Assembly: GCA_038087875.1 (NCBI GenBank)
Contig: CM075982.1
Span: forward strand, 14,942,001 to 15,006,000
Source of the DNA: Malacoraja senta
Taxonomy: Eukaryota
Reading direction: 5' to 3'
Length of the DNA: 64,000 nt
Shown: piece after piece, positions 33,770 to 57,259 of the stretch
How positions within the stretch are numbered: the first letter of the stretch is position 1
How the letters are laid out: the number at the start of each line of letters is the position of its first letter
The notes under the pieces: model-generated
Told to the model about the DNA's origin: nothing
Seen by the model: only the letters and a program-made list of their open reading frames with translations
Database searches by the model: none
Program-made: the position numbers and the translations under genes

Positions 33770-33906
33770 ATAGACACAAAATGCTAGAGTTATTCAGTGA
33801 GACTGGCAACATCTCTGGATAGAGGTTTACACAAATGATAGACACAAATGTCTTATCCAGAGATGTTGCCTGTCCCATTGAGTTACTCCAGCATTTTGTG
33901 TCTATG
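33770..33906. repeat. Palindromic (hairpin) repeat element; paralogues at ~40070, ~47550, ~55020, ~63560
   Basis: atagacacaaaatgct...catctctggata / tatccagagatg...agcattttgtgtctat. Confidence 0.7.
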
Positions 33907-35038: not shown

Positions 35039-35420
35039 TCAAAGGTCACACTTTTGATTCACTGTTGGATTGGGTGCTGCTGGCAGCTTGTTACAAAATG
35101 CCAAACCTTTGATGGCATTAATGAGCTTTGAACGATATTTGGTGCCAGCGTAAAAATACACAAAAGGATCCAGAAAACTATTGGCATAAAGGGCAAGAAC
35201 GCAACAGTAGTAAACCACTCCAATTTGTTGGTGATTTTTGCATCTCTTGACACTCACAACGGACACAATTAAACGTGTTACATTTATAGGAAGAAAGCAT
35301 ATTACAAAGATGGACAATATCACCATCATCATCTTGACAGTATGTCGGCATTTTTCTGAATGAGCAGTTAATGTCAAATTGGCCAATTTTCCTTTCAATA
35401 AGTAAAGTTGACACCAGCAA
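35039..35420 (-). pseudogene. P2Y-like GPCR copy B1, 3' fragment only (end of TM5 to stop), with a +1 frameshift near 35390
   Basis: Near-identical to 48816-49197; the 5' two-thirds are replaced by a rearrangement junction at ~35421. Confidence 0.92.
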
Positions 35421-36424
35421 CTTTATGTCCATCCCCTCCTTCTCATCAAACCTTCTGAACCCGCTAACATCCTCATGTTTGTAACGGAAAAAAATAATGT
35501 TCACTACGATAGATTTTTAATAAGTATTTCTGTTTTTAATCACTATTTCTGAACTCGGGTCAGTCAGCTTCTATGCGGGGAAATGGACATAATGACATTC
35601 CTGGTTGGGACCCTTCTCCAGTTACGTAAAAGACACTTAGATAGGTACATGGAATGGAAAGTTTTGGAGGGATATGGGTCAGGTGCAGGTAACTGGGACT
35701 ACTCAGTTAGGCAACCTGGTCGGTATGCACGGGTTGGGCCAAAGCGCCTGTTTTCATGCTGTATACCTCTATGACCCTACTCATTGGGCTGGGAGATTGC
35801 AACCTTCACGTGATACGCCCTGTTTCAACGAATACAATCAATCTGGCGTGCACAATCAAATAAGTTCAAATAGAACAAGTTGTCCTACAACTTTAAGCTG
35901 TGCACGCCATACGCAAGAAGAAGTCCCTACTCATTAAGTGATCAGAAGTTTAGAAAAGGAGATGATTGCTTTCCAGTCTGCCTTGACGTCCCAGTGCAGC
36001 AGCGACAGTGCTCAGCAAGAATATCTATTGAAACTCGTTTCACAACTCTTACTATTCCTTATGTAGATGATGAAACTTAGGGAGGCCCAAAACTGGGAAT
36101 ATAATTCAACATCCTGCATGTCTGAAAGTTACCAAATGTTTTGTTTTTTAATCAGGAAATGAGCTAACTGTCATGTTACTGAATGACGAAAGGAAAGATG
36201 ATTTCATAAATAATTTGATTGTTTGTCAATTCTGCGTTTCCAGTAAGTTCAGAAGTTATTCCATACTGAGCATTGAACTTGTTATTTCACAGCCTTGTGT
36301 ACAGGTATGGCTGTGTCACACATACCACTGAGCTACTAAACTTGGAGCCTGCAATAATACAGAAAACAAATTTCAATACTTGTATGTTTGAAGTTTTACA
36401 TTCATTTCCAATAAATAATGGTCA

Positions 36425-39400
36425 TGAAGCGAAATCATATTTTTTTATTCGCAAAACAAACAGAAACCCGTGACAACTGCGTGCCTATTCGAGCTTAAGC
36501 ACACAGCTCCTGTCGCTGGGAGGAGTGTTGATAACTAAAACTCCGCGAACGAACCACGGCGGTCACGTGACCGTGCCGACCAAAGATGAGGGTTCTGCCT
36601 TCCCAGCCCCACCACTAGTTGGCGCTACCGGACCCCGCCCAGAACCAGAGGAAAGGAAATGAGCAGGAGTCCGAATCAGGCGGCCAGACCGAGTGGAGAT
36701 AGGCATAACAGGTGCAACCGGTGAAAGTGGGTCGGCCAGTGGACGACCTCTACGCCGGGGTTGGGCTGCCCCCGAGCCGCAGGAAGGAAATCACCGGGTA
36801 CTTTCAGAGGGGAGCCATGAACCAGTTCAGCAGATGAGGTGTCCAAATCCACCTAAGGTGCCATTCGGATCCCCAGCAACACCCAAGGTAACACATCCAC
36901 CCAATCAGGGCCCGTGAGCCACGCTTTCAACGAAGATTTCAGGTGCCGGTGAAACTGCTCGACCACCCTGTTGGCCTGAGGATGGTACACAGTTGTGTGA
37001 TGCAGCTGAGCGCCGTACAGCTGAGCCATGGCCGACCACAGGGCAGAGGTGAACTGAGCACCACGGTCTGAAGAGATGTCGGCGGGAACTCCAGAACGTG
37101 CTACCCAGTGGGCCGCGAGAGCCCGAGCACAAGTCGCGGAAGAGGTGTCAGGAAGCGTGATGGTCTCGGGCCACCGCGTGAAATGGTCCACAATCGTGAG
37201 CAGGTGGGTGACACCTCGGGACGGCAGCAGAGGACCCACCAGGTCGACATGAATGTACTCGAACCGGTGTTGACGGACAACGAAATCCTGGAGCGGCGCA
37301 CATACATGCCGCTGGATCTTGGACATCTGGCATGGAATGCAGGCCCTGTCCCAGGCCCCAACCTGCTTGCGGAGGCCATGCCAGATGAACTTGGCCGCCA
37401 CCAACGCAGTAGTCGCTCGGATGGAAGGTGCCGCTGTTGGCGAGCGGACCAGGGGTCGGACACCTTCGTGAGCACCCTCCAGGAAATACCGGAAGTGCCG
37501 AACTGCCAAATAGAGAGCCAGGAGCTCACGGTTGAAAGCACTGTAGTTCCACTCTGGGGGGCGCAGGCGTCGGCTGAAAAAAGCGAGCGGCTGCCAACGA
37601 CCATCAATAAACTGCTCGAGGACCCCCCCGACTGCAGTATCAGAAGCTTCGACAGTGAGGGCGGTGGGGACAGCAGCCCGCAGGTGCACGGGTATGGTGG
37701 CGTTAGCGAGCGCCTCAGTGGCCCCGCCAAAAGCGGCCGTGGTCTCCGCGTCCCACACTAGGTCCCGCTGCTTGCTGGCCAGACACTGGAACAAAGGCCA
37801 CATGACCCGGGCCTTCGCTGGCATAAAACGGTGATAGAAGTTGATCATCCTCACAAATTCCTGGAGCCCTTTAAAGTTGTGGGGCCGGGGAAACTCCCGA
37901 ATCGCCTCCACCTTGGCGGGGGTAACATGGAATCTAAACTAAACTGGCACCTGGCGGCATTAATGACGAAACCGTGGTCCCGGAGGTGCTGGAACAATGC
38001 TCCTGCCGGGAGCAGCCGGTGACCGGAATGTCACCCAGATAAATAAATACAAAGTCCAACCCCCGGCCAACCTTGTCCATAAGCCACTGAAAAGCATGCG
38101 CGGCATTCTTGAGGCCGTACGGCATCCTCAACCACTCAAACAGGCCGAACGGGGTAATGATGGCAGTCTTAAGCACATCACCGGGGTGGACGGGGATCTG
38201 GTGGCAACCACGCACCAGATCAACCTTGGAGAATATTTTAGCCCCGTCCAAATGGGCCGTGAAGTCCTGGATGTGCGGGACTGGGTAGTGGTCAGCGGTC
38301 GTGACGGTGTTAAGGCTGCGGTAGTCTCCACAACGCCTCCACCCGCTGGACGACTTGGGACTCATATGGAGTGGGGAAGCCCATGGGCTGCTGGAGCGCC
38401 GCACAATACCCATATCCTCCATCCGCTGAAACTCCTCCTTAGTCAAACGCAGCTTGTCGGGCGGGAGCCTGCGCGCCCGTGCGTGAACCGGAGGATGTGA
38501 TGGACGACACCATGCTTAGGGGCGGCCGAGTGAAACTGAGGGGTCAGGATCTCCGGGAACTCGGCCAGAATCGGATCGTACATGCTGTCTGCATCAGACA
38601 CCGACCCGTGATGCGGGCCGGAGGAAACCGCGGACCACGGTGACGCAAGCTGGAGGGACTCGGGATGAACGAGGCGCTGGCCCCGGACGTCAACCAGGAG
38701 AGAAAAGGCCCGTAAAAAAGCGGTGCCAAGCAATGGCTGGGAGACGTCCGCGATAGTAAACGGCCATGAGTAATGGCGAGAGTCGAGAACGAGAGGAAAG
38801 GTGCGAGTACCATACGTGCGTATGGGGCAGCCGTTGACGGGTGGGGCTCACTTACCAGAACGAGTATCAGCCCCGGACGGAGGTAAGTTGCTGAGTTCAG
38901 CGCCAGAGTCCACTAGAAATCGTAGCCCGGAATGGCGGTCCCAGACGTAGAGGCGATGTTTTTGGTCGACTGCGATAGCCTCTACTGGCGATCGGCTGAG
39001 GCATTTCCCAGACGCTCGCAGGGAGCACAGCATCGGTGGGCCTCCGCACCCTAACGTTGGTGGTAGTAACACCACTGGCGCTTGCTGTGATCCACGGCGG
39101 TCGGCTGCAGCGCGGCGCTGTCGTTCGATGGTGGCAGGGATCGCCGAGGCCGTTGCGGAGCAGCGGACTCCGGTTGATGGAAACACCATCCTGCTGCTTG
39201 GCGAGCCGCAGCTCCTCCGCAAGTTCGGCGAGCTGCAGGTGGTCGGCGAAGGAGCATCCGGCGCGGAGCAGGCGGATGTCATCGGGCATCTGCTCCAGGA
39301 AAGCCTGCTTCAACATGAGACAAGGCTGGTGGCCGTCCATGCGCGACAGCATCTCGCTCATTAACACCGACGGCTTACGATCGCCAAGGCCGTCCATGTG

Positions 39401-39960
39401 TAAGAGCTGGGCCCCGCGATTGGGCGGCTGGGCCCGAAGGTGCGCAGCAGCAGCGCCTTGAGATCCTCAAATTTATTGATGGCGGGCGGATTCTGCAGGT
39501 AAGGGAGCAAACGGGTGGCAGTGTCCTGGCTGAGCGCACCAACCATGTAGAAATACCGGGTGGAATCCTCAACAATCTCGCGGATCTCGAACTGGGCCTC
39601 GATGTGTTGAAACCACACATGAGGCTGAACAGCGCAGAAAACGGCAGATCAAGGGAAACCGCGGTCTGCTGGGCGGGGTAGGTATCGAGGTTTTCGGCGG
39701 CGTTCATGTCCAGACCCGAAAAAAGTTTGGATTGTCGGGGTCACCACAGAAGCAAGACCGGGCGGGTTGAGTGAAATAGTTTTTTATTCGCACAAACAAA
39801 CAGAAACCCGTAAAAACCGCATGTCAATCGAGAACACAGCTCCTGTCGCTGGGAGGAGCGCTGATAACTAAAACTCCGCGAACGAACCCCCTGCGGTCAC
39901 GTGACCGTGCCGACCAATGATGAGGGTTCTGTCTTCCCAGCCCCACCGCGTGCCGCGACA
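36425..39960 (-). mobile_element. Degenerate Ty3/Gypsy LTR retrotransposon with both LTRs (36425-~36629 and 39748-39960), gag-PR-RT-RH-IN
   Basis: gag WFQHIEAQF/GDRKPS; protease FLVDSGAE; RT SPWASPLH...DYRSLN...YLGD; RNase H YSAFNRELLA; integrase CIPCQ, HVDLVGP, SDRGAQF; 4-bp TSD gtca/gtta; frameshifts. Confidence 0.95.
39734..39746 (-). other. Primer-binding site, tRNA-Trp (TGGTGACCCCGAC); second copy at 54684-54696
   Basis: 13-nt complement of the vertebrate tRNA-Trp 3' end (GTCGGGGTCACCA), 1 nt inside the 5' LTR. Confidence 0.85.
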
Positions 39961-41436
39961 GTTATTTGTAAAACAGGTGCCGCAACAGTTATTTGTAAAA
40001 CTGGTCACAAAGCGGAGAGGTTTACATTCTCATGTGTAGGAAGTAATTGCAGATGCTGGTTTACACCAAAATAGGCACAAAATGCTGGAGTTACTCAGTG
40101 AGACAGGCAACATCTCTGGATAGAGGTTTACACAAAAGATTGACACAACTGTCTTATCCAGAGATATTGCCTGTCCCACTGAGTTACTCCAGCATTTTCT
40201 ATCTTCAGCTTACATTCTCAGTTGGGTTCATAAATGTCCTTTGGCAAAAGAGATTGGCTTTGACTCATTTGCCGCCGAATGGTTGACCTGGTTTGACTTC
40301 AGTGACTCTAGTCCCAAAATGACAGACTGCGACGACCTTCGTAAACGACCTTTCATACTTGAGCAACATGAGGATGCGCAACATTTTCCTGCCATGGTCA
40401 CCTGCAAACTGAGTTGATGTTTGGTTGGGAGGTGTCAGATTAGAATTTTGCTGCAAACGTTCAGGCAGATGATACAAGAGAAAATGTGGCAACACCATTG
40501 GATTATTGGATCATGGAATAAGAGGGATGGCAAATGACTGAAGACTTGTAGTAAATACCGTACACCGAGGTATAGAGACCTTGAAATCTGCCGGCAAACA
40601 AAATGTATAAAGCTTGAGAATTAAGAATGTGAAAAGACTTGATAAAGACAGGTGTGAAGTATCAGCGAGGTCCTATTTGCTACGTTGCATAGACCAGAAA
40701 CTATTCAGGAAGAGTTTTTTTAATTCATTCTTGGATGTGGACATTATTGGTCATTACAGTTGTTATAGCCAGCTCTTATTCCCACTCTTTTGAACCATCG
40801 GTACTGTTTGGTGGAGGCTTCCAGGATTATGACACAAGACAGTGGAGGAACAGGTGCATTGGGAGAACAACTTGGAGGTGTTCCCAGTCACTTGCAGGTA
40901 GAGCAAATAACAGAGCCTTGTGAGCCGCTGCAGGGTAGCTTCGTAGGTAGTTCACATAGTGACCTTGCAGGTGGGGAGAATTAGGTTGGCAGGTAGTGTT
41001 GGCAAAATAGTGTATCTGCCATGGTGTGGTCAGTAGCGTTTTCGTCTCTGATCAGAAGATTTAATGTTCAAGTCCCACAACAACGTTGTTCCTCACAAAT
41101 TGAGATGGATAGCGAAGTTCAGCCCCAAAGGCAGGCTGCACCGCAGTAACTGTGATATTTCAGACAAGATTTTAAACATACAAGATACTATGGTGCGGGT
41201 TCAGAGAAGGCAAGGATTATATCCATTTTTAACTTATTTTCGCTGGTGTTGAGCTTCTCGAGTGTTGCTGGGGCTATTCACTCTGGTGATCCAGTTAGGT
41301 CATTGATCAATTGTGATGTCCAAGATATTGATCCTGCGGAACATGAACCTCCAGGATATTGATGCTGAAGAACTTGAACAGATGATTTGCGGGCGATTGG
41401 GTTATTTGCAGATGAGACAAGGAATGAAGACACAAG

Positions 41437-41963
41437 GAACATAGAAACATAGAAACATAGAAAACAGATGCAAGAGTAGGCCATTCAGCCCTTCAAACCA
41501 GCATTACCATTCAATATGATTGTGGCTGATCATCCAAAATCTCTACTCCATTCCTGCTTTTTTCCCCATATTCCTTGATTCCTTTTCCTTTACCTGGTGA
41601 ACCTACACTGCACCTCCTCAAGAATTTCCTTCCTCAAATTAGGAGACCAAAACTGCACACAGTACTCCAGGTGCGGTCTCACCAGGGCCCTGTACAACTG
41701 CTGTAGGACCTCCTTGCTCCTATACTCAAATCCTCTCGCTGTGAAGGCCAGCATGCCATTTGCTTTCTTCACTGCCTGCTGTACCTGCATGCTTACTTTC
41801 AGTGACCGATGTACAGGTCTCGTTGGACCTCTCATTTTCCTAATCTGACACCATTCAGATAAAAATCTGCCTTATAATTTTTGCCATCAAAGTGGATAAC
41901 CTCACATTTATCCACATCTGCCATGCATCTGCCCACTCACCCAACCTATCCAAGCCACCCTGC
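41437..41963 (-). mobile_element. CR1 LINE fragment (internally deleted) at the U1/U2 junction
   Basis: KKANGMLAF...LYRALVRPHLEYCVQFWSP; (atagaaac)n tail. Confidence 0.88.
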
Positions 41964-43905
41964 AGTTGTGGGAAGAAAATTCATGGAAACTGTCTAAATT
42001 TCTCATTTAGCTATGAATTCTGTTTAAAGAGTTGATAAAATAGCAACATCTCATGTGACCCAATATGAATTGTGTGTTTATTTACTAACTATGGCGCATT
42101 GAAAATGTATTTTGGAGTCCTCAGACTTGATTTAAACACTTTTTGCCAGCTTCTGAATTGTTCTGTAGATCAATACATTATGAATAATTCATGCTGACAT
42201 ATCCAGATCATCATCACCTTCTCATGGACATTTTGGGATGGACAGTAAATGCTGGTCTTGCTAATGATGGGCAGATCCTGAAAATGGTTGAAATATGGGG
42301 ATAAGGGCGACAATATCAAGAACGTAGTTTTCAATCCACCCTCAAAGGCTTGCACAGACAGTGAAGCATTTCTCAAATTGGCAGGGTTTAAAATACTCAT
42401 TGCCAAGATTTTTCCAAGCCATGATGGAGCAAACTGAATTGAAGATAAAGGTTGACTGGTCAATTTTTGTATTGTTCCAAAGAAATGCTGTCGCTGTTGT
42501 GCAAGTAAACACAGTAGCAAATGGCAACTGTGGCAGATTTCTTCTTGTCGGCTTTATTTTATTAATATCTGCCAAATAAAGTAGTTAGATTTAAGGTCTC
42601 ATCTGAAGGAAAGCACCATCATCAGTAGAGGATTCACTCTCTTGTTCCCAGCTGTTGGGCAAGATTATCCACTTGGGAATCTAGAATGGGATTTGAACCA
42701 CATCCTTGAGTCTGAGGGGAGAATTTTTTCTCTGTCTATTATAGGAAAGTGTGGGAACTGTGTTGATGAGAGTAGATCAGATATGAACATTTGGGTGCAG
42801 ACAAAGTTGAAGTGATTTGTTGGAGAGAAAAATTAATCCACAGGAGACTGGGTTAACAGTCCAATTGCAACCATGGACCTTTAGACATGGCAATACTGTG
42901 GCTATTTGGAGCAGCAGGTTATATTAGAAAAAATCAAGAAATTTACACCTAATATTGCATTGGATTTATTAATTCAAATTGAGTTTGCGATGGATTTCCC
43001 ATCTTTGATTTGAATGATTGGCCTGGTTAGCAAATTCATGAGGATAACGACAACGCACATTTATGTCCCTTTCAGCCAGTAGCACAAACAACAACCACAT
43101 CTTAGTTTCACATGTCTATCTGTGCTCCTGTTCATTGACTTTATTTTCTCACGCATTGAACTGATGTCCAAACCATTGCAATGTTTGGTAACATTGATCT
43201 TCCAGCTTTCCTCTGTCTTCCTGATGCATTAATGAAGCTTTTTCTTCTCACCTTCTGAAACTGTCAGGTTCAAATTCTCGTAGTAAGTTGGTTTAAATCC
43301 ACCTCCTGTGCACAGGCAAGAACTCTATTGCGATTAATTTTTTTTTTATGAACCACCTGTCTTTTTGAGTCCTTATCTGATTGCCATTTTTCTCTCACTC
43401 TCTCTTCCTTCCTTCCAGTTTTCATACTTAAGTGAATGGATTGTCAACAACTGTGTTAGATTCAATATTTTTATTTGTATAGATAGATACATTCATCGGA
43501 GCAACGATAAAAGAGCATCAGGATATGACAAAGCAAAACAATTCTTGCTGAAAAGTTTCAAGTGCCTTAAATGCTTATTTCAGAGACATTTTTAGGGAAG
43601 CATAATACGATCATTCACTTTTGAACTTAGCTAAAAACAACGGCAAACATTTGTAGCCTTTAAATTAGTAAAAGAATGGCCTGCTAGTCTGTTTTTGACA
43701 TTAGTTAGAGAATGATGCTGTCCATTCCTCTGCCTGATCCATGGCATTAGTAATGTTGAGCCTGAACCATTGGACAATCATCTAGCCTAAAGTTTGACAT
43801 TTGACATGAAGTGCAAATGAAAACACAGCTAATACTGCACAAAATGCAGTATTTTGAGTTAACATTGGCCTAATAACAGCATATTCTAAATCTTTGGATC
43901 AATGA

Positions 43906-44913
43906 TCACACTCTTGACTCACTGCTGGATTGGGTGCTGCTGGCAGCTATTGGCAGCTTGTTACAACAGGCCACACCTTTGATGGCATTAACGAGCTTTG
44001 AACGATATTTGGTGCCAGCATAAAAATACACAAAAGGATCCAGAACATTATTGGCGTAAAGGGCAAGAACGCAACAGTAGTAAACCACTCCGATTTGTTG
44101 GTAATTTTTGCAGCTCTTGACACTCACAACGTACATAATTAAACGTGTTACGTTTATAGGAAGAAAGCATATTACAAAGATGCACAATATCACCATCATC
44201 ATCCTGACAGCATGTCGGCCTTTTTCTGAATGAGCAGTTAATGTCAAATTGGCCAATTTCCTTTGAATAAGTAAAGTTGACACCAGCAAGGATATAAATG
44301 GAATTCCAAAGGTCAGAATAAACAACATAATAGTAAAAGTGAGTATATCTTTCTCTACATTTGGTTGATTGAAGCTCATACAATGTATTTTTCCATTCAG
44401 TTCAAAAACATTGACTCTATAAAAAGACGGAAATGCGAATAAACCAGCTAACAACCAAATCAAGACACAAATGACAATGGTACATTTCTTTGTAACCCTG
44501 CTTTGCGAGTGGATAGGCTTGATGATCATGTAACATCGATAATTGCTGATGCATGTCAGGAAGAAGACACTTGCCAACACGATGCAATACATCATGAATG
44601 TTTGGAGTTTGCACACAAAGTTTCCAAATATCCAATAATTGTTGTTGCTGTGGTAAATTATTAGGAGAGGATAGGTGAGTGTGAAAAGCAAGTCGCCCAT
44701 GCACAGATTCACCATCAAAATGTCAATTGGGGTCTTTTTCTTCACGTGCGAGCAAAATATCCATAGGGCCAGACTGTTGAAGCTTGCAGCTAAAATGAAG
44801 AAGATTGTAAGGGTCGGAGGCATCATTCTTGTGAGGAACTGTTCATCCAGCAAACATGTTCTATTCATTGTGGCTATGATTGATGAATTGCCTGTTTCTT
44901 CAGTAGGAGCCAT
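43906..44913 (-). CDS. P2Y-like / delta-group class A GPCR, copy A2, intact, 335 aa
   Basis: Seven hydrophobic segments; NLCMGDL (D2.50), WIFGNFVCKL (C3.25), LTCISNYRC, CFLP, DPFVYFYAG; N-terminal and ECL3 cysteines; N-glycosylation sites NSS and NRT. Confidence 0.95.
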   Translation of the reverse strand: MAPTEETGNSSIIATMNRTCLLDEQFLTRMMPPTLTIFFILAASFNSLALWIFCSHVKKKTPIDILMVNLCMGDLLFTLTYPLLIIYHSNNNYWIFGNFVCKLQTFMMYCIVLASVFFLTCISNYRCYMIIKPIHSQSRVTKKCTIVICVLIWLLAGLFAFPSFYRVNVFELNGKIHCMSFNQPNVEKDILTFTIMLFILTFGIPFISLLVSTLLIQRKLANLTLTAHSEKGRHAVRMMMVILCIFVICFLPINVTRLIMYVVSVKSCKNYQQIGVVYYCCVLALYANNVLDPFVYFYAGTKYRSKLVNAIKGVACCNKLPIAASSTQSSSESRV

Positions 44914-47900
44914 CTATGACGAAGAAGTAGAATCAAAAATATCATTTAAATTGACCAACCATTCTCTAGCATTGCGTGACGTTTTGGTGATGAGCAAACA
45001 GTGCTGTAGAACATTGGATAATGGCTGCAGACCTGCTTTACTATAATACTTTGCACTTGGTCTGTTTCACACTGGCTTTAGTGGAGCTTCATCAGTTAAT
45101 AAAATGAGACAAAGAGCCGTTAAAGTGTGTTTTTGAATTCATTCCTGTAAATTTAAAGCTGTGATGGTCCCACTGATAAGTCTCGGAATCAAGGACTTCT
45201 GTACATTGTGTCCTCTTCCATTTTGTTCACTGCCATCCCATTCTCCAACCCCCACCCCACGCACACACCTGCTTCCTATCACTCATAGCCTATCCTCTGA
45301 ATCTCCACCCCTCTGCGTTTGATTTTGGTTGGGACTTAGCAAATTCCTTTTGAAAAATGAAGCACACAGAGTGGCGCAGCTGGGAGAGCTGCTGTCTTAC
45401 AGCACCAGAGACCCAGGTTCGATCATGACCACGGGTGCTGTCTGTGTGAATTTTGCACGTTCTTCTTGTGACCACATGGGTTTCCTCCAAGTGCTTCAGT
45501 TTCCCCCACGTCCCAAAGACATGCTGATTAATTTGGTTAAGGTTAATTGGCCTCTGCAAATTATGCCCTACATCATAAGGTTATAAGGTCATATGATAGG
45601 ATCAGAATTAGGCCATTCGGCCCATCAAGCCTACTCTGCCATCCTGAGATATGGTGCCCAAAATTGCTCATGTGTAGGGAATGGATGCGAAAGTGGAATA
45701 ACAGAACTAGTGCGATTGGGGAAATTAATGGTCAGCATGGCATCTCTGAAGATCATGGATAGGTGACGTTTCAGATCAGGACACTCTTCAGACTAAGGAA
45801 GGGTCCCAACCTGAAATATCACTTATCCATGTTCTCCAGAGATGATACATGACCTGCTGAGTTACTCCAACATTTTGTGACAATATGGTACTTGGAATCC
45901 CAAAGACGATAGTTTAATCTGAACTCTGTTATGGGAGATCACTAGTTGGAAAGAGAAACCGAGCAAAGCCTCTTCATAACACCCTGACCTCCCACCTCCC
46001 CAACCCCATCTCACATTCTTGCCTCAGTTGAGACAGAGTTTGGCGGTCCCTCACTGGCCCCATCAGTCACTCTTGAACACAGGAAAGCAGAGTGGAAGCA
46101 GTGGTTGTCTTCCCCCAAGCTACTGCTAATGGAAAAAAATAGTGTTCCCTACGATAGATTTTTAATATCTATTTTTATGTTTTACAAATATGAGGATGTT
46201 AACGGGTTCAGAAGGTTTGATAAGAAGGAGGGGGTGGATAAGCATGGTCATTTCCCCCTGGTGTGCATGAGACTGAGAGGTCTGTAATAATTACAAAGGG
46301 GATAGTAGATAAGTTGAATAGTCACGGGCTTTTGGGGAGTTTAAAAGTAGAGGGCACAGATTGAAGGTGAGAGGGGGGAAGATTTTATAAAGACCTTAGT
46401 GGCAATTTTTCACTCAGAGGGTGGTGAAGCGAACTGCCAGGAAAAGGGGCATTATGATAATAATAATAATAATAATAATAAATACTTTATTAATCCCCTT
46501 TTCAGGGGAAATTCAGATAATTAAAAGACGAGACACAAGAGAATGCAGATGATGGAATCTTGAGAAAATAACAAGCTGATGGATGAACTCAGGTCAGTCA
46601 GCTTCTATGCGGGGAAATGGACATAATGACATTCCTGGTTGGGACCCTTCTCCAGTTACGTAAAAGTCACTTGCATGGGTGCATGGATAGGAACGTTTTG
46701 GAGGGATATGGGTCAGGCGCAGGTAAGTGGGACTACTCAGTTAGGCAACCTGGTCGGTATGCACGGGTTGGGCCAAAGCGCCTGTTTTCATGCTGTATAC
46801 CTCTATGACCCTCCTCATTGGGCTTGGAGATTGCAACCTTCACGTGATACGCCCTGTTTCGACGAATGCAATCAACCTGGCGTGCACAATCAAATAAGAT
46901 CAAATAGAACAAGTTGTCCTACAACTTTAGGCTGTGCACGCCATACACAAGAAGAAGACCCTACTCATTAAGTGATCATAAGTTTAGAAAAGGAGATGAT
47001 TGCTTACCAGTCTGCCTTGACGTCCCAGTGCAGCCGCGACAGTGCTCAGCAAGAATATCTATTGAAACTCGTTTCACAACTCTTACTATTCCTTATGTAG
47101 ATGATGAAACTTAAGGAGGCCCAAAATTGGGAACATAATTCAACATCCTGCATGTCTGAAAGTTACCAAATGTTTTGTTTTTAAATCAGGAAATTAGCTA
47201 ACTGTCAAGTTACTGAAAGACGAAAGGAAAGATGATTTTATAAATAGTTTGATTTGTTTGTCAACTCTGCTTTTCCAGTAAGTTCAGAAGTTATATCACA
47301 CAGCGTTTTTAATAACCCGATTGAACTTGTTATTTCACAGCCTTGTGTACAGGTATGGCTGTGTCACACTTATGCCACTGAGCTACTAAACCTGGAGCCT
47401 GCAATAATACAGAAAACAAATTTCAATACTTGTATGTTTGAAATTTTACATTCATTTGCAATAAATAATGCTCATTTGTAAATGATCACAAACAGAGAAG
47501 TTTACATTCTCATGTGTAGAAAGTAATTGCAGATGCTGGTTTACACCAAGATAGACACAAATGCTGGAGTTATTCAGTGTGACAGGCAACATCTCTGGAT
47601 AGAGGTTTACACAAAAGATAGACACAAATGTCTTATCCAGAGATGTTGCCTGTCCCATTGAGTTACTCCAGCATTTTGTGTCTATGTTCAGCTTACATTC
47701 TCAGTTGGGTTCATAAATGTCCTTTGGCAAAGGAGATTTGCTTGACTCATTTGCCGCCGAATGGTTGACCTGGTTTGACTTCAGTGACTCTAGACCCTAA
47801 ATGGCAGACTGCGACGACCTTCGTAAACGACCTTTCATACTTGAGCAACTTGGGGATGCGCAACATTTTCCTGCCATGGTCACCTGCAAACTGAGTTGAT

Positions 47901-48815
47901 GTTTGGGAGGTGTCAGATTAGAATTTTGCTGCAAACGTTCAGGCAGATGATACAAGAGAAAATGTGGCAACACCATTGGATTATTGGATCATGGAATAAG
48001 AGGGATGGCAAATGACTGAAGACTTGTAGTAAATACCGTACACCGAGGTATAGAGACCTTGAAATCTGTTGGCAAACAAAATGTATAAAGCTTGAGAATT
48101 AAGAATGCAAAAAGACTTGATAAAGACAGGTGTGAAGTATCAGCGAGGTCCTATTTGCATAGACCATAAACTATTGAGGAAGAGTTTTTTAAATTCATTC
48201 TAGGATGTGGAAATCCACCTCCTGTGCACTGGCAAGGTCTCTGGTGGGATTTGTTTTTTAAACCATTGTCTTTTTGAGTCCTTATCTGACTTTGCCATTT
48301 TTTTCTCTCTCTCTCTTCCTTCCTTCCAGTTTTCATACTTAAGTGAATGGATGTTCAACAACTGTCTTGGATTCAATATTTTTACTTGTATATATAGATA
48401 CATTCATGGGTACAACGATAAAAGAGCATTAGGATATGACAAAGCAAAACAATTCTTGCTGAAAAGTTTCAAGTGCCTTAAATGCTTATTTCAGAGACAT
48501 ATTTAGGGAAGCATCACACAATCATTCACTTTTGAACTTAGCTAAAAACAACGGCAAGCATTTGTCGGCATTAAATTAGTAAAAGAATGGCCCATTATTC
48601 TGTTTTTGACATTAGTTAAAGAATGATGCTGTCCATCCCTCTGTGCCTGATCCATGGCATCAGTAATGGTGAGCCTGACCATTGCACAGGTCATCTAGCA
48701 AGCCTAAAGTTTGACATTTGACTTGAAGTGCAAATTAAAACACAGATATTACTGCATAAAATGCATTATTTTGAGTTAACATTGGCCTAATAACAGCATT
48801 TTCTAAATCTTTGGA

Positions 48816-49820
48816 TCAAAGGTCACACTTTTGATTCACTGTTGGATTGGGTGCTGCTGGCAGCTTGTTACAAAATGCCAAACCTTTGATGGCATTAATG
48901 AGCTTTGAACGATATTTGGTGCCAGCGTAAAAATACACAAAAGGATCCAGAAAACTATTGGCGTAAAGGGCAAGAACGCAACAGTAGTAAACCACTCCGA
49001 TTTGTTGGTGATTTTTGCAGCTCTTGACACTCACAACGGACACAATTAAACGTGTTACATTTATAGGAAGAAAGCATATTACAAAGATGGACAATATCAC
49101 CATCATCATCCTGACAGTATGTCGGCATTTTTCTGAATGAGCAGTTAATGTCAAATTGGCCAATTTCCTTTGAATAAGTAAAGTTGACACCAGCAAGGAT
49201 GTAAATGGAATTCCAAAGGTCAGAATAAACAATATAATATTGGAAGTGAGTAAATCTATCTCTGTAATTGGATGATTGTAGCTCATACAATGTAGTTTTC
49301 CATTCAATTCAAAAACATTGATTCTAAAAAAAGACTGAAATGCGAATAAACCAGCTAACAACCAGATCAAGACACAAATGACAATGGTACATTTCTTTGT
49401 AATCCTGCTTTTGGACTGGATAGGCTTGATGATCACGTAACATCGATAATTGCTGATGCATGTCAGGAAGAAGATACCTGCCACCCCGGAGCAATACATG
49501 AGGAATGTTTGGAGTTTGCACACAAAGTCTCCAAATATCCAATAATTGTTGTTGCTGTGGTAAATTATTACAAGAGGATAGGTGAGTGTGAAAAGCAAGT
49601 CGCTTATGCACAGATTCAACATCAAAATGTCAATTGAGGTCTTTTTCTTCACGTGCGCGCAAAATATCCATAGGGCTAGACTGTTAAAGCTTGTAGCTAA
49701 AATGAAGAAGATTGTAACGGTCGGAGGCATCATTCTTGTGAGGAACTGTTCATCCAGCAAACATGTTCTATTCATTGGGGCTATGATTGATGAATTGCCT
49801 GTTTCTTCAGTAGGAGCCAT
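48816..49820 (-). CDS. P2Y-like / delta-group class A GPCR, copy B2, intact, 334 aa
   Basis: Same 7TM motifs as A2; different C-tail. Confidence 0.95.
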   Translation of the reverse strand: MAPTEETGNSSIIAPMNRTCLLDEQFLTRMMPPTVTIFFILATSFNSLALWIFCAHVKKKTSIDILMLNLCISDLLFTLTYPLVIIYHSNNNYWIFGDFVCKLQTFLMYCSGVAGIFFLTCISNYRCYVIIKPIQSKSRITKKCTIVICVLIWLLAGLFAFQSFFRINVFELNGKLHCMSYNHPITEIDLLTSNIILFILTFGIPFTSLLVSTLLIQRKLANLTLTAHSEKCRHTVRMMMVILSIFVICFLPINVTRLIVSVVSVKSCKNHQQIGVVYYCCVLALYANSFLDPFVYFYAGTKYRSKLINAIKGLAFCNKLPAAPNPTVNQKCDL

Positions 49821-51785
49821 CTATGACGAAGAAGAAGAACCAATATAATTTAAATTGACCAACCATTCTCTAGCATTGCGTGACTTTTTGGTGAAGAGCA
49901 AACAGTGCTGTAGAACATTGGATAATGGCTGCAGACCTGCTTTACTATAATACTTTGCACTTGGTCTGTTTCACACTGGCTTTAGTGGAGCTTCATCAGT
50001 TAATAAAATGAGACTAAGAGCCCTTAAAGTGTGTTTTTGAATTCATTCCTGTAAATTTAAAGCTGTGATGGTCCCACTGATAAGTCTAGGTGTCTTCCAC
50101 TCAAGGACCCCTGTACATCATAAGGTTATAAGGTCATGTGTTAGGAGCAGAATTAGGCCATTCGGCCCATCAAGTCTACTCCGCCATCCTCAGATATGGT
50201 GCCCAAAATTGCTCATGTTTAGGGAATAGATGCGAAAATGGGATAACAGAACTAATGCGAACGGGCGATTGATGGTCAGCATGGCATCTGTGAAGAGCAT
50301 CGATAGGTGACGTTTCAGATCAGGACACTTCTTCAGACTGTGGAAGGGTCCCAAGCTGAAACATCACCGATTCATGTTCTCTGGAGATGATGCATGACCT
50401 GCTGAGTTACTCCAACACTTTGTGACAATATGGTACTTGGACTCCCAAAGCCAATACTTCAATCTGAACTCTGTTATGGGAGATCACTAGGTGGAAAGAG
50501 AAACCGAGCAAAAATTAACATTGTGATTGATTCTGGCCTCTGAGCTCTTAAGATTCACTGGCCTGTTTGCTCTTAAAACGTAGTAGAGGATTGTGATGGT
50601 GTTGAGAGCCTGGGACCATTCAGGGGAAGTGCAGAAACTGCCGCATGAACGATGGAAGGATTGTACCCATCTCCTGAGCGCCAAACCACCCATCGTGACC
50701 CCCACCTCCCCAACCCCATCTCACTAGACACATTCTTCCTCAGTTGAGACATAGTTTGGCAGTCCATCACTGGCCCCATCAGTCACTCTTGAACACAGCA
50801 AAGCAGAGTGGAAGCAGTCGTTGTCTTCCCCCAAGCTACAGCTAACGGAAAAAAATAATGTTCCCTACGATAGATTTTTAATAAGTATTTCTGTTTTTAA
50901 TAACTATTTCTGAACTCAGGTCAGTCAGCTTCTATGCGGGGAAATGGACATAATGACATTCCTGGTTGGGACCCTTCTCCAGTTACGTAAAAGACACTTG
51001 GATAGGTACATGGAAAGGAACATTTTGGAGGGATATGGGTCAGGCGCAGGTAAGTGGGACTACTCAGTTAGGCAACCTGGTCGGTATGCATGGGTTGGGC
51101 CAAAGCTCCTGTTTTCATGCTGTATACCTCTATGACCCTACTCATTGGGCTGGGAGATTGCAACCTTCACGTGAAACGCCCTGTTTCGACGAATACAATC
51201 AATCTGGCATGCACAATCAAATAAGTTCAAATAGAACAAGTTGTCCTACAACTTTAGGCTGTGCACGCCATACGCAAGAAGAAGTCCCTACTCATTAAGT
51301 GATCAGAAGTTTAGAAAAGGAGATGATTGCTTACCAGTCTGCCTTGACGTCCCAGTGCAGCAGCGACAGTGCTCAGCAAGAATATCTATTGAAACTCGTT
51401 TCACAACTCTTACTATTCCTTATGTAGATGATGAAACTTAGGGAGGCCCAAAATTGGGAATATAATTCAACATTCTGCATGTCTGAAAGTTACCAAATGT
51501 TTTGTTTTTTAATCAGGAAATGAGCTAACTGTCATGTTACTGAATGACGAAAGGAAAGATGATTTCATAAATAATTTGATTGTTTGTCAATTCTGCGTTT
51601 CCAGTAAGTTCAGAAGTTATTCCATACTGAGCATTGAACTTGTTATTTCACAGCCTTGTGTACAGGTATGGCTGTGTCACACATACCACTGAGCTACTAA
51701 ACTTGGAGCCTGCAATAATACAGAAAACAAATTTCAATACTTGTATGTTTGAAGTTTTACATTCATTTCCAATAAATAATGGTCA

Positions 51786-54700
51786 TGAAGCGAAATCATA
51801 GTTTTTTATTCGCAAAACAAACAGAAACCCGTGACAACTGCGTGCCTAGTCGAGCTTAAGCACACAGCTCCTGTCGCTGGGAGGAGTGTTGATAACTAAA
51901 ACTCCGCGAACGAACCACGGCGGTCACGTGACCGTGCCGACCAAAGATGAGGGTTCTACCTTCCCAGCCCCACCACTAGGTGGCGCTACCGGACCCCGCC
52001 CAGAACCAGAAGAAAGGAAATGAGCAGGAGTCCGAATCCGGCGGCCAGACCGAGTGGAGATAGGCATAACAGGTGCAACCGGCGAAAGCGGGTCGGCCAG
52101 TGGACGACCTCTACGCCGGGGTTGGGCTGCCCCCGAGCCGCAGGAAGGAAATCGCCGGGTACTTTCCGAGGGGAGCCATGAACCAGTTCAGCAGATGAGG
52201 TGTCCAAATCCACCTAAGGTGCCATTCGGATCCCCAGCAACACCCAAGGTAACACATCCACCGGATCTTGGACATCTGGCATGGAATGCAGGCCCTGTCC
52301 CAGGCCCCAACCTGCTTGCGGAGGCCATGCCAGATGAACTTGGCCGCCACCAACGCAGTAGTCGCTCGGATGGAAGGTGCCGCTGTTGGCGAGCGGACCA
52401 GGGGTCGGACACCTTCGTGAACACCCTCCAGGAAATACCGGAAGTGCCGAACTGCCAAATAGAGAGCCAGGAGCTCACGGTTGAAAGCACTGTAGTTCCA
52501 CTCTGGGGGGCGCAGGCGTCGGCTGAAAAAAGCGAGCGGCTGCCAACGACCATCAATAAACTGCTCGAGGACCCCCCCCGACTGCAGTATCAGAAGCATC
52601 GACAGTGAGGGCGGTGGGGACAGCAGCCCGCAGGTGCACGAGTATGGTGGCGTTAGCGAGCGCCTCAGTGGCCCCGCCAAAAGCGGCCGTGGTCTCCGCG
52701 TCCCACACTAGGTCCCGCTGCTTGCCGGCCAGACACTGGAACAAAGGCCACATGACCCGGGCCTTCGCTGGCACAAAACGGTGCTAGAAGTTGATCATCC
52801 TCACAAATTCCTGGAGCCCTTTAATGTTGTGGGGCCGGGGAGACTCCCGAATCGCCTCCACCTTGGCGGGGGTAACATGGAATCTAAACTAAACTGGCAC
52901 TTGGCGGCATTAATGACGAAACCGTGGTACCGGAGGTGCTGGAACAATGCTCCTGCCGGGAGCAGCCGGTGACCAGAATCTCACCCAGATAAATAAATAC
53001 AAAGTCCAACCCCCGGCCAACCTTGTCCATAAGCCACTGAAAAGCATGCGCAGCATTCTTGAGGCCGTACGGCATCCTCAACCACTCAAACAGGCCGAAC
53101 GGGGTAATGATGGCAGTCTTAAGCACATCACCGGGGTGGACGGGGATCTGGTGGCAACCACGCACCAGATCAACCTTCGAGAATATTTTAGCCCCGTCCA
53201 AATGGACCGTGAATTCCTGGATGTGCGGGACTAGGTAGCGGTCAGCGGTCGTGACGGTGTTAAGGCGGCGGTAGTCTCCACAAGGCCTCCACCCGCTGGA
53301 CGACTTGGGACTCATATGGAGTGGGGAAGCCCATGGGCTGCTGGAGCGCCGCACAATACCCATATCCTCCATCCGCTGAAACTCCTCCTTAGTCAAATGC
53401 AGCTTGTCGGGCGGGAGCCTGCGCGCCCATGCGTGAACCGGAGGATGTGATGGACGACACCATGCTTAGGGGCGGCCGAGTGAAACTGAGGGGTCAGGAT
53501 CTCCGGGAAATCGGCCAGAATCGGATCGTACATGTTGTCTGCATCAGACACCGACCCGTGATGCGGGCCGGAGGAAACCGCGGACCACGGTGACGCAAGC
53601 TGGAGGGACCCGGGATGAACGAGGCGCTGGCCCCGGACGTCAACCAGGAGAGAAAAGGCCCGTAAAAAAGCGATGACTAGCAATGGCTGGGAGACGTCCG
53701 CGATAGTAAACGGCCATGAGTAATGGCGAGAGTCGAGAACGAGAGGAAAGGTGCGAGTACCATACGTGCGTATGGGGCAGCCGTTGACAGGTGGGGCTCA
53801 CTTACCAGAACGGGTATCAGCCCCGGACGGAGGTAAGATGCTGAGATCAGCGCCAGAGTCCACTAGAAATCGTAGCCCGGATTGGCGGTCCCAGACGTGG
53901 AGGCAATGTTTCTGGCCGACTGCGATAGCCTCTACTGGCGATCGGCTGAGGCATTTCCCAGACGCTCGCAGGGAGCACGGCATCGGCGGGCCTCCGCACC
54001 CCAACGTTGGTGGCAGTAACACCACTGGCGCTTGCTGTGATCCACGCCGGTCAGCTGCGGCGCGGCGCTGTCGTTCGATGGTGGCAGGGACCGCCGAGGC
54101 CGTTGCAGAGCAGCGGACTCCGGTTGATGGAAACACCATCCTACTGCTTGGCGAGCCGCAGCTCCTCCGCAAGTTCGGCGAGCTGCAGGTGTACGGCGAA
54201 GGAGCACCCGGCGCAGAGCAGGCGGATGTCATCGGGCATCTGCTCCAGGAAAGCCTGCTTCAACATGAGACAAGGCTGGTGGCCGTCCATGCGCGACAGC
54301 ATCTCGCTCATTAACACCGACGGCTTACGATCCCCAAGGCCGTCCATGTGTAAGAGCTGGGCCGCGCGATCGGGCGGCCGAGCCCGAAGGTGCGCAGCAG
54401 CAGCGCCTTGAGATCCTCAAATTTATTGATGGCGGGCGGATTCTGCAGGTAAGGGAGCAAACGGGTGGCAGTGTCCTGGCTGAGCGCACCAACCATGTAG
54501 AATGTAGAGGTGGAATCCTCAACAATCTCGCGGATCTCGAACTGGGCCTCGATGTGTTGAAACCACACATGAGGCTGAACCGCCCAGAAAACGGCAGATC
54601 AAGGGAAACCGCGTTCTGCTGGGCGGGGTAGGCATCGAGGTTTTAGGCGGCGTTCATGTTCAGACCCGAAAAAAGTTTGGATTGTCGGGGTCACCACTGA

Positions 54701-54910
54701 AGCGAGACCAGGCGGGTTGAGTGAAATAGTTTTTTATTCGCAAAAACAAACAGAAACCCGTAAAAAACGCATGAGTAGTCGAGAACACAGTTCCTGTCGC
54801 TGGGAGGAGCGCTGATAACGAAAACCCTGCGAAAGACCCCCCGCGGTCATGTGACCGTGCCGACCAATGATGAGGGTTCTGTCTTCCCAGCCCCACCGCG
54901 TGCTGCGACA
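51786..54910 (-). mobile_element. Duplicated copy of the same Gypsy insertion (LTRs 51786-~51990 and 54698-54910) with a ~410-bp integrase-core deletion at ~52261
   Basis: Same flanks and TSD, and the same shared lesions, as 36425-39960. Confidence 0.95.
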
Positions 54911-56382
54911 GTTATTTGTAAAACAGGTGCCGCGACAGTTATTTGTAAAACTGATCACAAAGCAGAGAGGTTTACATTCTCATGTGTAGGAAGTAATTGC
55001 AGATGCTGGTTTCCACCAAAATAGACACAAAATGCTGGAGTTACTCAGTGAGACAGGCAACATCTCTTGATAGAGGTTTACACAAAACATAGACACAAAT
55101 GTCTTATCCAGAGATGTTGCCTGTCCCACTGAGTTACTCCAGCATTTTCTATCTTCAGCTTACATTCTCAGTTGGGTTCATAAATGTCCTTTGGCAAAAG
55201 AGATTGGCTTTGACTCATTTGCCGCCGAATGGTTGACCTGGTTTGACTTCAGTGACTCTAGTCCCAAAATGACAGACTGCGACGACCTTAGTAAACAACC
55301 TTTCATACTTGAGCAACATGAGGATGCGCAACATTTTCCTGCCATGGTCACCTGCAAACTGAGTTGATGTTTGGGAGGTGTCAGATTAGAATTTTGCTGC
55401 AAATGTTCAGGCAGATGATACAAGAGAAAATGTGGCAACACCATTGGATTATTGGATCATGGAATAAGAGGGATGGCAAATTACTGAAGACTTGTAGTAA
55501 ATACCATACACCGAGGTATGGAGACCTTGAAACCTGCTGGCAAACAAAATGTATAAAGCTTGAGAATTAAGAATGTGAAAAGACTTGATAAAGACAGGTG
55601 TGAAGTATCAGCGAGGTCCTATTTGCTACGTTGCATAGACCAGAAACTACTGAGGAAGAGTATTTTTAATTCATTCTCGGATGTGGACATTATTGGTCAT
55701 TCCAGTTGTTATAGCCAGCTCTTATTCCCACTCTTTTGAACCATCGGTACTGTTTATTGGAGGCTTCCAGGATTATTACACAAGGCAGTGGAGGAACAGG
55801 TGCATTGGGAGAACAACTTGGAGGTGTTCCCAGTCACTTGCAGGTAGAGCAAATAACAGAGCCTTGTGATACTCTGCAGGGTAGCTTCGTAGGTAGTTCA
55901 CATAGTGACCTTGCAGGTGGGGAGAATTAGGTTGGCAGGTAGTGTTGGCAAAATAGTGTATCTGCCATGGTGTGGTCAGTAGCGTTTTCGTCTCTGATCC
56001 GAAGATTTAATGTTCAAGTTCCACAACGATGTTGTTCCTCACAAATTGAGATGGATGGCGAAGTTCAGCCCCAAAGGCAGGCTGCACCGCAGTAACTGTG
56101 ATATTTCAGACAAGATTTTAAACATACAAGATACTATGGTGCGGGTTCAGAGAAGGCAGGGATTATATCCATTTTAAATTTATTTTCGCTAGTGTTGAGC
56201 TTTTCGAGTGTTGCTGGGGCTTTTCACTATGGTGATCCAGTTAGGTCATTGATCAATTGTGATGTCCAAGATATTGATCCTGCGGAACGTGAACCTCCAA
56301 GATATTGGTGCTGAAGAACTTGAACAGATGATTTGCTGGCGATTGGGTTATTTGCAGATGAGACAAGGAATGAAGATACAAG

Positions 56383-57259
56383 GAATATAGAAACATAGAA
56401 ACATATAAAATAGATGCAATAGTAGGCCATTCAGCCCTTCAAGCCAGCACCGCCATTCAATATGATTGTGGCTGATCATCCAAAATCTGTACTCCATTCC
56501 TGCTTTTTCCCCATATTCCTTGATTCCTTTAGCCCTAAGATCTAAACCTAACCCTCTCTTGAAAACACCCAATGAATTGGCCTCCACTGCCTACTGTGGC
56601 AGAGAATTCCACAGATTTATAACTCTCTGGGAGAAAAGATTTTCCTCATCTCAGTCCTAAATGGCCTACACCTTATTCTTAAACCGTGACCCCTAGTTCT
56701 GGACTCCCCCAACGTTGGGAAATTTTTTCCTGCATCTTGCCTGTCCAATCCCTTAAGAATTGTATATGTTTTTATCAGATTCCCTCTCATCCTTCTAAAC
56801 ACCAGTGAATACAAGCCCAGTCGACCCATTCTTTCATCATATGTCAGTCCTGCCTTTCCGGGAACTTACCTGGTGAACCTACACTGCACCTCCTCAAGAA
56901 TTTCCTTCCTCAAATTAGGAGACCAAAACTGCACACAGTACTCCAGGTGCGGTCTCACCAGGGCCCTGTACAACTGCAGTAGGACCTCCTTGCTCCTATA
57001 CTCAAATCCTCTCACTGTGAAGCCCAGCATGCCATTAGCTTTCTTCACTGCCTGCTGTACCTGCATGCTTACTTTCAGTGACCGATGTACAAGGACACAC
57101 AGGTCTCGTTGGACCTCTCATTTTCCTAATCTGACACCATTCAGATAAAAATCTGCCTTCTTATTTTTGCCACCAAAGTGGATAACCTCACATTTATCCA
57201 CATTATACTGCATCTGCCATGCATCTGCCCACTCACCCAACCTATCCAAGTCACCCTGC
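56383..57259 (-). mobile_element. CR1 LINE fragment at the U2/U3 junction
   Basis: LYRALVRPHLEYCVQFWSP...RLGLYSL...ESRTRGH; (atagaaac)n tail. Confidence 0.9.

Follow-up and report, generated by a model that had tools for sequence, protein, structure and literature searches.

Tandem paralogues of the primate L/M opsin type are homogenised by gene conversion except at the sites that define their function, and MRGPRX, FPR, TAAR and OR are fast-evolving sensory or immune families of class A G protein-coupled receptors (GPCRs). In another group of class A receptors, the N-terminus of P2Y2, anchored by a disulfide, works as a built-in agonist; residues K1.31, Y2.64, R3.29, Y6.58, R6.62, K7.36 and R7.39 of P2Y2 and P2Y4 contact the phosphates, and the segment of extracellular loop 2 (ECL2) after the conserved cysteine, together with position 6.58, touches the ligand (PMC12075631). 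Here, a small tandem array of intronless class A GPCR genes is described in a 64,000-nucleotide stretch of the genome of the skate Malacoraja senta (contig CM075982.1, positions 14,942,001 to 15,006,000 of the forward strand), which is referred to below as the window. The array is composed of three paralogue types, A, A' and B. Types A and A' were found to form a patchy gene-conversion mosaic, and type B has probably diverged from both by selection on amino-acid changes.

The gene was found in five copies in the window, all on the minus strand, by the open reading frame (ORF) list, tblastn and self-alignment. Only A2 and B2 are intact, whereas A1, A3 and B1 are pseudogenes; frequent pseudogenes were part of the original prediction, which was made from the letters of this stretch. 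Comparison loci were taken from Leucoraja erinacea (L001) and Amblyraja radiata (L002), with Pristis, Narcine, Rhincodon and Heptranchias as outgroups; Mobula and Hypanus were represented by gene tables only, not DNA. Type A unites A2, A3 and the Leucoraja gene (LeA; bootstrap 80), type A' unites A1 and a frameshifted copy beside the Amblyraja B gene (ArA'; bootstrap 98), and type B unites B2, B1 and the Amblyraja B gene (ArB; bootstrap 100). By collinearity, A1 and its downstream DNA are the positional orthologue of the Amblyraja A' pseudogene (L002:15144-16145), the last gene of the array, while the Leucoraja A gene lies upstream of a B slot and the Amblyraja B gene downstream of an A slot. 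Because the tree groups the types across species and collinearity agrees, the three types are older than skate speciation, and the ancestral skate order is A-B-A'.

The two intact receptors share 83% amino-acid and 93.9% nucleotide identity with each other, and A2 is 92.5% identical to the L. erinacea protein (P0001) and B2 94.3% identical to the A. radiata protein (P0002). The ratio of nonsynonymous to synonymous divergence (dN/dS, or omega) between orthologues is 0.40-0.56 (0.40 pairwise for B2 and ArB), indicating constraint on both A and B after the separation of the genera. The lesions that inactivate A' differ between the two species, being a TAA stop and a 2-bp deletion in the window species and 1-bp and 2-bp deletions in A. 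radiata, and the pairwise omega of A1 and ArA' is only 0.40, which suggests that A' was lost recently and independently in each. Heptranchias perlo likewise has a tandem pair of paralogues from this family, separated by 9 kb (L006:10001-10975 and 19073-20062).

The original prediction held that divergence between the paralogues is concentrated in segments lining the ligand pocket. The peptides that it quoted are all exact, namely YCTVLASV, YCIVLASV and YCSGVAGI in transmembrane helix 3 (TM3), three strings from ECL2 to TM5 and four from the top of TM6, and its string from intracellular loop 3 (ICL3) is the same in A1, A2 and B2. Between A2 and B2, the N-terminus, TM4 and ICL3 are nearly invariant, as claimed, with 1, 2 and 0 differences respectively, and the stretches said to be variable carry 8 (TM3), 6 (ECL2), 6 (TM5) and 5 (TM6). 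Judged by the maximum count per 20-codon window, the differences are clustered beyond chance (A1-A2, p=0.0007; A1-B2, p=0.009; A2-B2, p=0.046), and in the same scan those of orthologue pairs are unclustered (p=0.93 and 0.72). The string INVTHLIMT is exact, but it comes from A3, a pseudogene with four frameshifts, so that its variants are pseudogene changes; A1, the source of YCTVLASV, has a premature stop. The high similarity of the flanking DNA reaches ~310 nt upstream of the gene and ~590 nt past the stop codon, with A/B identities of ~96% upstream and ~93% downstream, but beyond these limits the A and B flanks are unrelated (sliding windows).

The relationship between A and A' is that of a patchy gene-conversion mosaic. 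In a four-taxon comparison, 13 sites from -486 to +462 support the grouping by species (A1,A2 | LeA,ArA'), 17 sites from +495 to +781 support the grouping by type (A1,ArA' | A2,LeA), species-type sites appear again at 949-1072, and the 3' flank is mixed, turning type-like from about +1480. Only 8 runs were observed against 30.7 expected (p<5e-5). All 17 type-supporting coding sites lie within a block of codons 165-261 that contains no species-supporting site, and all 16 fixed nucleotide differences between A and A' lie in codons 165-260 (13 nonsynonymous, 2 synonymous and 1 ambiguous). Outside the block, LeA and ArA' (dS 0.018) resemble each other more closely than they resemble the window copies of their own types, indicating that homogenisation occurred in more than one lineage and spared the same block. 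Conversion between A and A' would have homogenised the 5' half of the gene, the upstream flank and parts of the 3' region, and a block of ~290 bp (ECL2, TM5 and the top of TM6) would have kept older type-specific sequence in at least two lineages. The primate L/M opsins are similar in being a mosaic of adjacent paralogues, most of the gene following the species tree and a short block the gene-type tree. Unlike in the opsins, however, synonymous divergence is also elevated in the skate block, pseudogenes make up two of the three A-lineage copies in this genome, and the specificity residues are putative.

Type B was found to be separated from A and A' almost entirely by amino-acid changes. A direct count of fixed nucleotide differences gave 22 nonsynonymous, 1 ambiguous and 0 clearly synonymous, and in a McDonald-Kreitman-like table the B stem (23:0) departs from the orthologues (62 nonsynonymous to 37 synonymous; p=1e-4). 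Codon models were fitted with our own GY94/F3x4 likelihood engine to A2 codons 1-318 only, the B tail being frameshifted. The family-wide omega (M0) is 0.53. On the B stem, no synonymous change was placed and omega reached its upper bound, with a likelihood ratio test (LRT) against omega=1 of 14.0 (p=1.8e-4); the statistic was 14.8 under an alternative topology, 14.9 with intact genes only, 11.1 without the cluster of changes in TM3 and 6.8 (p=0.009) without all three hot segments. The branch-site LRT was 29.8 with the four post-duplication stems as foreground, 5.5 (p=0.019) for the A' stem alone and 0 for the A stem alone. The M7/M8 site test, named in the original prediction as a check, gave an LRT of 16.5 (p=0.0003), and the comparison of M2a with M1a gave 12.1 (p=0.0024), falling to 7.2 (p=0.028) when restricted to intact genes. 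Approximately 4-6% of sites were assigned an omega of ~3 and ~52% an omega of 0.12, most candidate sites being in ECL2, extracellular loop 3 (ECL3) and the tops of TM4 and TM5. The terminal branches of A2, LeA, B2 and ArB all have omega <1 (0.53 for the B branches). Type B would be a lineage whose separation from A/A' involved amino-acid changes alone and predated the split of the skate genera, with purifying selection acting on it afterwards.

Neutral changes specific to B are unevenly distributed, amounting to 1/489 in synonymous sites and the 5' flank and 11/458 in the 3' flank (p=0.0025). Because they are nearly absent from the former and present in the latter, the 5' flank and coding region of B were apparently homogenised long ago. 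The B-specific nonsynonymous density, 23/750, is higher than both the 1/489 (p=1.6e-4) and the density in all neutral proxies taken together (synonymous sites and both flanks), 12/947 (p=0.015). Recent A-to-B conversion was ruled out as the source of the low dS, since sites grouping A and B within species are very few. A compensated frameshift was likewise ruled out as the source of the TM3 cluster, all changes being in-frame single-base substitutions.

To locate the differences within the receptor, generic numbering was anchored on the class A residues N46 (1.50), D74 (2.50), R126 (3.50), W153 (4.50), P205 (5.50), P252 (6.50) and P293 (7.50), all present and mostly invariant or nearly invariant across 30 sequences, and on C178, and was checked against a P2Y4 alignment and the published ligand contacts (PMC12075631). 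A pocket set of 46 generic positions was chosen before testing. Differences between paralogues are enriched in this set (9/21 for A1-A2, p=0.001; 11/45 for A2-B2, p=0.04; 18/79 for the Heptranchias paralogues, p=0.015), as are the fixed differences between types (8/27, p=0.027), whereas differences between orthologues are not (4/23 for A2-LeA, 1/19 for B2-ArB, 3/17 for A1-ArA' and 9/83 for Pristis-Narcine). The bias is strong for the fixed differences between A and A', six of ten of which are pocket positions (45.53, 5.38, 5.42, 5.46, 6.51 and 6.58; p=0.0009). Five sites, 167, 181, 186, 193 and 260, carry three residues, one for each of A, A' and B (P=2e-4), and the changes of B in ECL2 and the TM5/TM6 vestibule map to the lower ECL2 segment and 6.58. 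The variable pocket of the original prediction is in keeping with this enrichment of paralogue differences, but of the B-specific changes approximately three in four fall at positions outside the set.

These remaining changes of B affect the core and the cytoplasmic side. The TM3 cluster is common to B2 and A. radiata B and includes S3.39G, which replaces a serine found without exception in 20 other chondrichthyan sequences; further changes occur at 7.46/7.47, 1.47, 2.48/2.49, ICL1, three residues of ICL2 and 6.30, so that the sodium-site residues 3.39 and 7.46 are both included. A focus of the B changes on otherwise invariant sites was ruled out except for S3.39G, the positions being moderately variable. 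At the C-terminus, a 10-nt deletion between two AGCTGCC repeats (A2 equivalent, 43949-43958), common to B2, B1 and A. radiata B, puts the last ~16 codons out of frame. A serine-rich tail ending in SRV, the ancestral state, is kept in the A types and Pristis, and the B tail is without the serine cluster, which suggests altered phosphorylation or trafficking. The conserved G-protein face of the original prediction is therefore not uniform, since B differs in ICL1, ICL2 and 6.30 and its C-terminal tail is replaced. We infer that differences in ligand recognition among A, A' and B may have been favoured by selection, or shielded by it from conversion, and that B may also differ in activation and desensitisation behaviour.

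The best explanation of these data is probably an old three-type array in which A and A' became a conversion mosaic and B diverged by selection on amino-acid changes; the mosaic, the nonsynonymous excess of fixed differences, the conservation of types across species and the pseudogene lesions are direct observations. Selection for amino-acid differences between the paralogues is partly supported, and several points weigh against it. The pocket list is generic, enrichment within the extracellular half is marginal (8/43 vs 3/50, p=0.06), and the B-specific changes, taken by themselves, show no pocket enrichment (5/22, p=0.20). The seven TM3 changes fall within 27 nt and could perhaps be one complex mutational event. 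The codon models are our own implementation rather than PAML or HyPhy, the sequences are few, and the genes are recombinant; recombination inflates site-model tests. The signal of omega>1 rests mostly on missing synonymous and near-missing 5'-flank changes, and the B nonsynonymous density (3.1%) is not significantly above the B-specific density of the 3' flank (2.4%). The A/A' fixed differences (13 nonsynonymous to 2-3 synonymous) are not significantly above neutral. The A1-A2 pair alone gives no sign of omega>1: in its variable segments dS is 0.213 and dN 0.138, elsewhere 0.018 and 0.012, so that dS rises with dN and omega is ~0.65 in both partitions. Diversifying selection, as originally predicted, is thus supported for B vs A/A' but not for A1 vs A2, where omega is ≤1 and synonymous divergence is equally raised, the outcome named in advance as refuting it.

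That same pair also argues for a neutral mosaic, in which the variable segments are patches that conversion missed or, once they were too divergent, could not overwrite, and selection on ligand binding is absent. Both dS and dN of A1-A2 are raised ~12-fold in the hot segments with equal omega, the boundary between species-type and type-supporting sites is sharp, and the neutral B-specific divergence is itself uneven. This alternative is nevertheless unlikely. In the block of codons 165-261, type-specific sequence was kept both by the window species and by the Leucoraja/Amblyraja lineage, the block coincides with ECL2, TM5 and TM6-top positions that touch the ligand in P2Y2/4 (PMC12075631), and three-state sites are in excess. 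Moreover, a neutral mosaic cannot yield 22-23 nonsynonymous to 0-1 synonymous changes on the B stem, because neutral conversion removes both kinds of difference equally. Relaxed constraint, with the family drifting to loss and its differences being free changes in redundant copies, would be in keeping with three pseudogenes among five copies, the independent breakage of A' in two species, the high family-wide omega, the moderate variability of the positions changed in B, and the 17 nonsynonymous to 1 synonymous differences between A2 and A3, most of them on the pseudogene A3. It is very unlikely, as the omega of the B stem is significantly >1 and not just equal to 1, A and B are intact in different species with constrained orthologues, about half of the sites evolve at the low omega given above, and the pocket set is avoided by orthologue differences and favoured by paralogue differences.

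The original prediction had likened the locus to a chemosensory or immune-sensing receptor repertoire, and continuing arms-race diversifying selection in such a repertoire is quite unlikely. Across sharks and rays, the sites with omega ~3 do lie mostly in the extracellular loops and at the tops of the helices, genes are born and lost with pseudogenes left behind, L. erinacea and Mobula have a complement factor B-like gene next to the receptor on its upstream side, and the Heptranchias paralogues likewise differ preferentially at pocket positions. On the other hand, there are only 1-3 genes per species, forming a single 50%-identity cluster in 1.8 billion representatives, orthologues are 92-94% identical in amino acids, and the terminal branches of the intact genes show omega <1. 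The family shares tandem duplication, pseudogenes and selection signals in extracellular loops and helix tops with MRGPRX, FPR, TAAR and OR but, unlike them, is very small and has orthologues conserved across genera. With two intact genes in the window, a large lineage-variable multigene family was not found, and the array does not point to a new chemosensory family of large size.

Both intact proteins match Pfam 7tm_1 far above the cut-off of 30.5 bits (A2, 161.6 bits, E=3e-47; B2, 157.3 bits, E=7e-46). The AlphaFold2 model of A2 (pLDDT 81, pTM 0.80) has seven transmembrane helices and helix 8, and its closest solved folds by Foldseek are P2Y1/2/4 (TM score 0.77-0.81 by model and 0.88-0.92 by target). 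By sequence, the best solved relatives are P2Y4, P2Y1, P2Y2, GPR17, PAR2 and HCAR2/3, the P2Y1/2/4 matches having E values of 1e-40 to 1e-37 and identities of ~27-31%. Identity above 50% is confined to shark and ray proteins, 1-3 per species among 23 matches, whose automatic names ('P2Y-like', 'HCAR-like') disagree. An exhaustive HMMER search of the 1.8 billion representatives showed the one cluster and then a drop to ≤36%; the next-best matches with checked names are a lamprey 'P2Y1-like' protein, P2Y4, P2Y1 and PAR2/3. No close relation to a named P2Y subtype was found, P2Y1, P2Y4 and the lamprey P2Y1-like protein all being at ≤~34% identity.

The resemblance to P2Y1, P2Y2 and P2Y4 lies in these best sequence and fold matches, an intronless coding exon, an N-terminal cysteine paired with C7.25 and C3.25 with the ECL2 cysteine, an ECL2 beta-hairpin, a CF(L/V)P motif with F6.48, R6.55 (R257) and DPxxY, and R6.55, F6.48, DPxxY and both cysteine pairs are kept in the family. 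C20, C268 (7.25), C101 (3.25) and C178 are invariant, and two extracellular disulfides, C20-C268 and C101-C178, would be expected as in P2Y1-like receptors. An N-terminal motif before TM1, TCLLDEQFLT-MMPP (A2 residues 18-34, ~44812-44862), is almost invariant across the family. Unlike in those receptors, identity is low, the family forms its own chondrichthyan clade, and none of the seven phosphate contacts of P2Y2/P2Y4 is kept in the HMMER alignment to P2Y4, the residues here being L27, H88, T105, M260, S264, Y279 and V282. H6.52 of P2Y receptors is N here, D3.49 is replaced by Y and Y5.58 by T. Because these residues are replaced, the family is most likely not a nucleotide receptor, nor a P2Y in the functional sense. 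The unusual microswitches of A2 (residues 125-127, 213, 250 and 292) are Y3.49-R3.50-C3.51 in place of D/ERY, T5.58, F6.48 and D7.49. The receptors GPR17, CysLT1/2, OXGR1, HCAR2/3 and PAR2 of the delta branch show comparable sequence and fold similarity; unlike these acid and lipid-mediator receptors, to which no orthology exists, the skate genes lack a long PAR-type N-terminus, and the carboxylate anchor R3.36 of HCAR is V in type A and G in type B. The retained R6.55 may indicate an anionic group on the ligand, as in acid and lipid-mediator receptors. By sequence, the family belongs to the P2Y/PAR cluster, of which it is an orphan branch confined to chondrichthyans.

The window is vertebrate DNA of ~40% GC without assembly gaps, and its features are collected in Table 1. 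In A1, a premature TAA stands at codon 166 (29387-29389), and the 2-bp deletion near 28885 removes the normal stop. B1 has lost its 5' two thirds and carries a 1-bp insertion at 35390. The four frameshift indels of A3 are a 2-bp deletion (~60543), 1-bp insertions (60469 and 60404) and a 1-bp deletion (~60163), three of which recur in contigs of an independent-looking, DNA-like sequencing run (X1) matched to A2.

Table 1. Features of the receptor array in the window (positions are those of the whole stretch)
Feature	Position	Strand	Description and basis
A2	43906-44913	-	intact 335-aa intronless class A GPCR gene, type A; ORF
B2	48816-49820	-	intact 334-aa paralogue, type B; ORF
A1	28879-29884	-	type A' pseudogene, last gene of array; tblastn
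B1	35046-35420	-	B-type 3' fragment, ~last 125 codons; tblastn
A3	59870-60876	-	type A pseudogene; tblastn
Type-specific block of A2	44131-44421	-	codons 165-261: top of TM4, ECL2, TM5, ICL3, TM6
Type-specific block of A1	29102-29392	-	equivalent to A2 44131-44421
TM3 cluster of B2	49473-49502	-	codons 107-116; 3.31, 3.35, 3.36, 3.37, 3.39, 3.40; codon alignment
B-type C-terminal tail	48816-48870	-	10-nt deletion, frameshift relative to A types
A/B homology block, A2 side	43295-45206	-	gene, ~310 nt upstream and ~600 nt downstream; self-blastn, 91.9% identity
A/B homology block, B2 side	48211-50118	-	self-blastn, 91.9% identity
Duplicated ~15 kb unit, part	42204-47268 matching 58162-63220		97%; self-blastn
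Duplicated ~15 kb unit, part	33181-41585 matching 46957-56530		96-98%; self-blastn

Two units of ~15 kb each, [A3...B2] and [A2...B1], are 96-98% identical by self-alignment. Skates would have inherited the three slots A-B-A', of which the window would represent the end of the tandem array; in this genome, an A-to-B unit of ~15 kb would have been duplicated once more, and each unit would then have lost one gene. The present order would accordingly read A3 (pseudogene)-B2 / A2-B1 (pseudogene), followed by A1 (A', pseudogene), with one A and one B intact. Decay after the duplication (33181-63220) was reciprocal, one unit keeping B2 and losing A3 and the other keeping A2 and losing B1, and the number of intact genes was not raised by it. 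Each unit also contains ORFs (36853-37911 and 52111-53396, minus strand) of a long terminal repeat (LTR) retrotransposon of the Ty3/gypsy type, encoding reverse transcriptase, RNase H and integrase domains. The same element, with ~87% identity, occupies the orthologous site in L. erinacea and A. radiata, indicating that the insertion is older than the skate genera. The intergenic segments 45292-45885, 46678-47073 and 47470-47865 have summed contig depths of hundreds of thousands to millions, and are very high-copy interspersed repeats common to related species.

Outside the window, a complement factor B-like gene (Sushi-VWA-Trypsin) adjoins the receptor upstream in L. erinacea (L001:1-2359) and Mobula hypostoma, and in Hypanus a copy sits within a LIG3-like gene. 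A more speculative possibility, which we regard as doubtful, is that the locus is an undescribed orphan system beside the complement factor B-like gene, in which the skate paralogues are held apart by selection at vestibule residues (45.53, 5.38, 6.58 and ECL2) despite conversion. They would then form a small, specificity-diversified set of sensors for anionic mediators or microbial products, with B rewired in its sodium-site core and having lost the serine-rich tail.

What does this array contribute to the study of receptor evolution? It is a small natural system in which the effects of gene conversion can be separated from those of selection on receptor specificity, with three types conserved across skate genera, a block of ~290 bp that resisted homogenisation and one branch made up of amino-acid changes only. 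The list of type-specific residues is short and offers direct targets for mutagenesis. Overall, this branch of the P2Y/PAR cluster, specific to sharks and rays, is unstudied, and, since it lacks the nucleotide-binding residues, identification of its ligand would add a new ligand-receptor pair.

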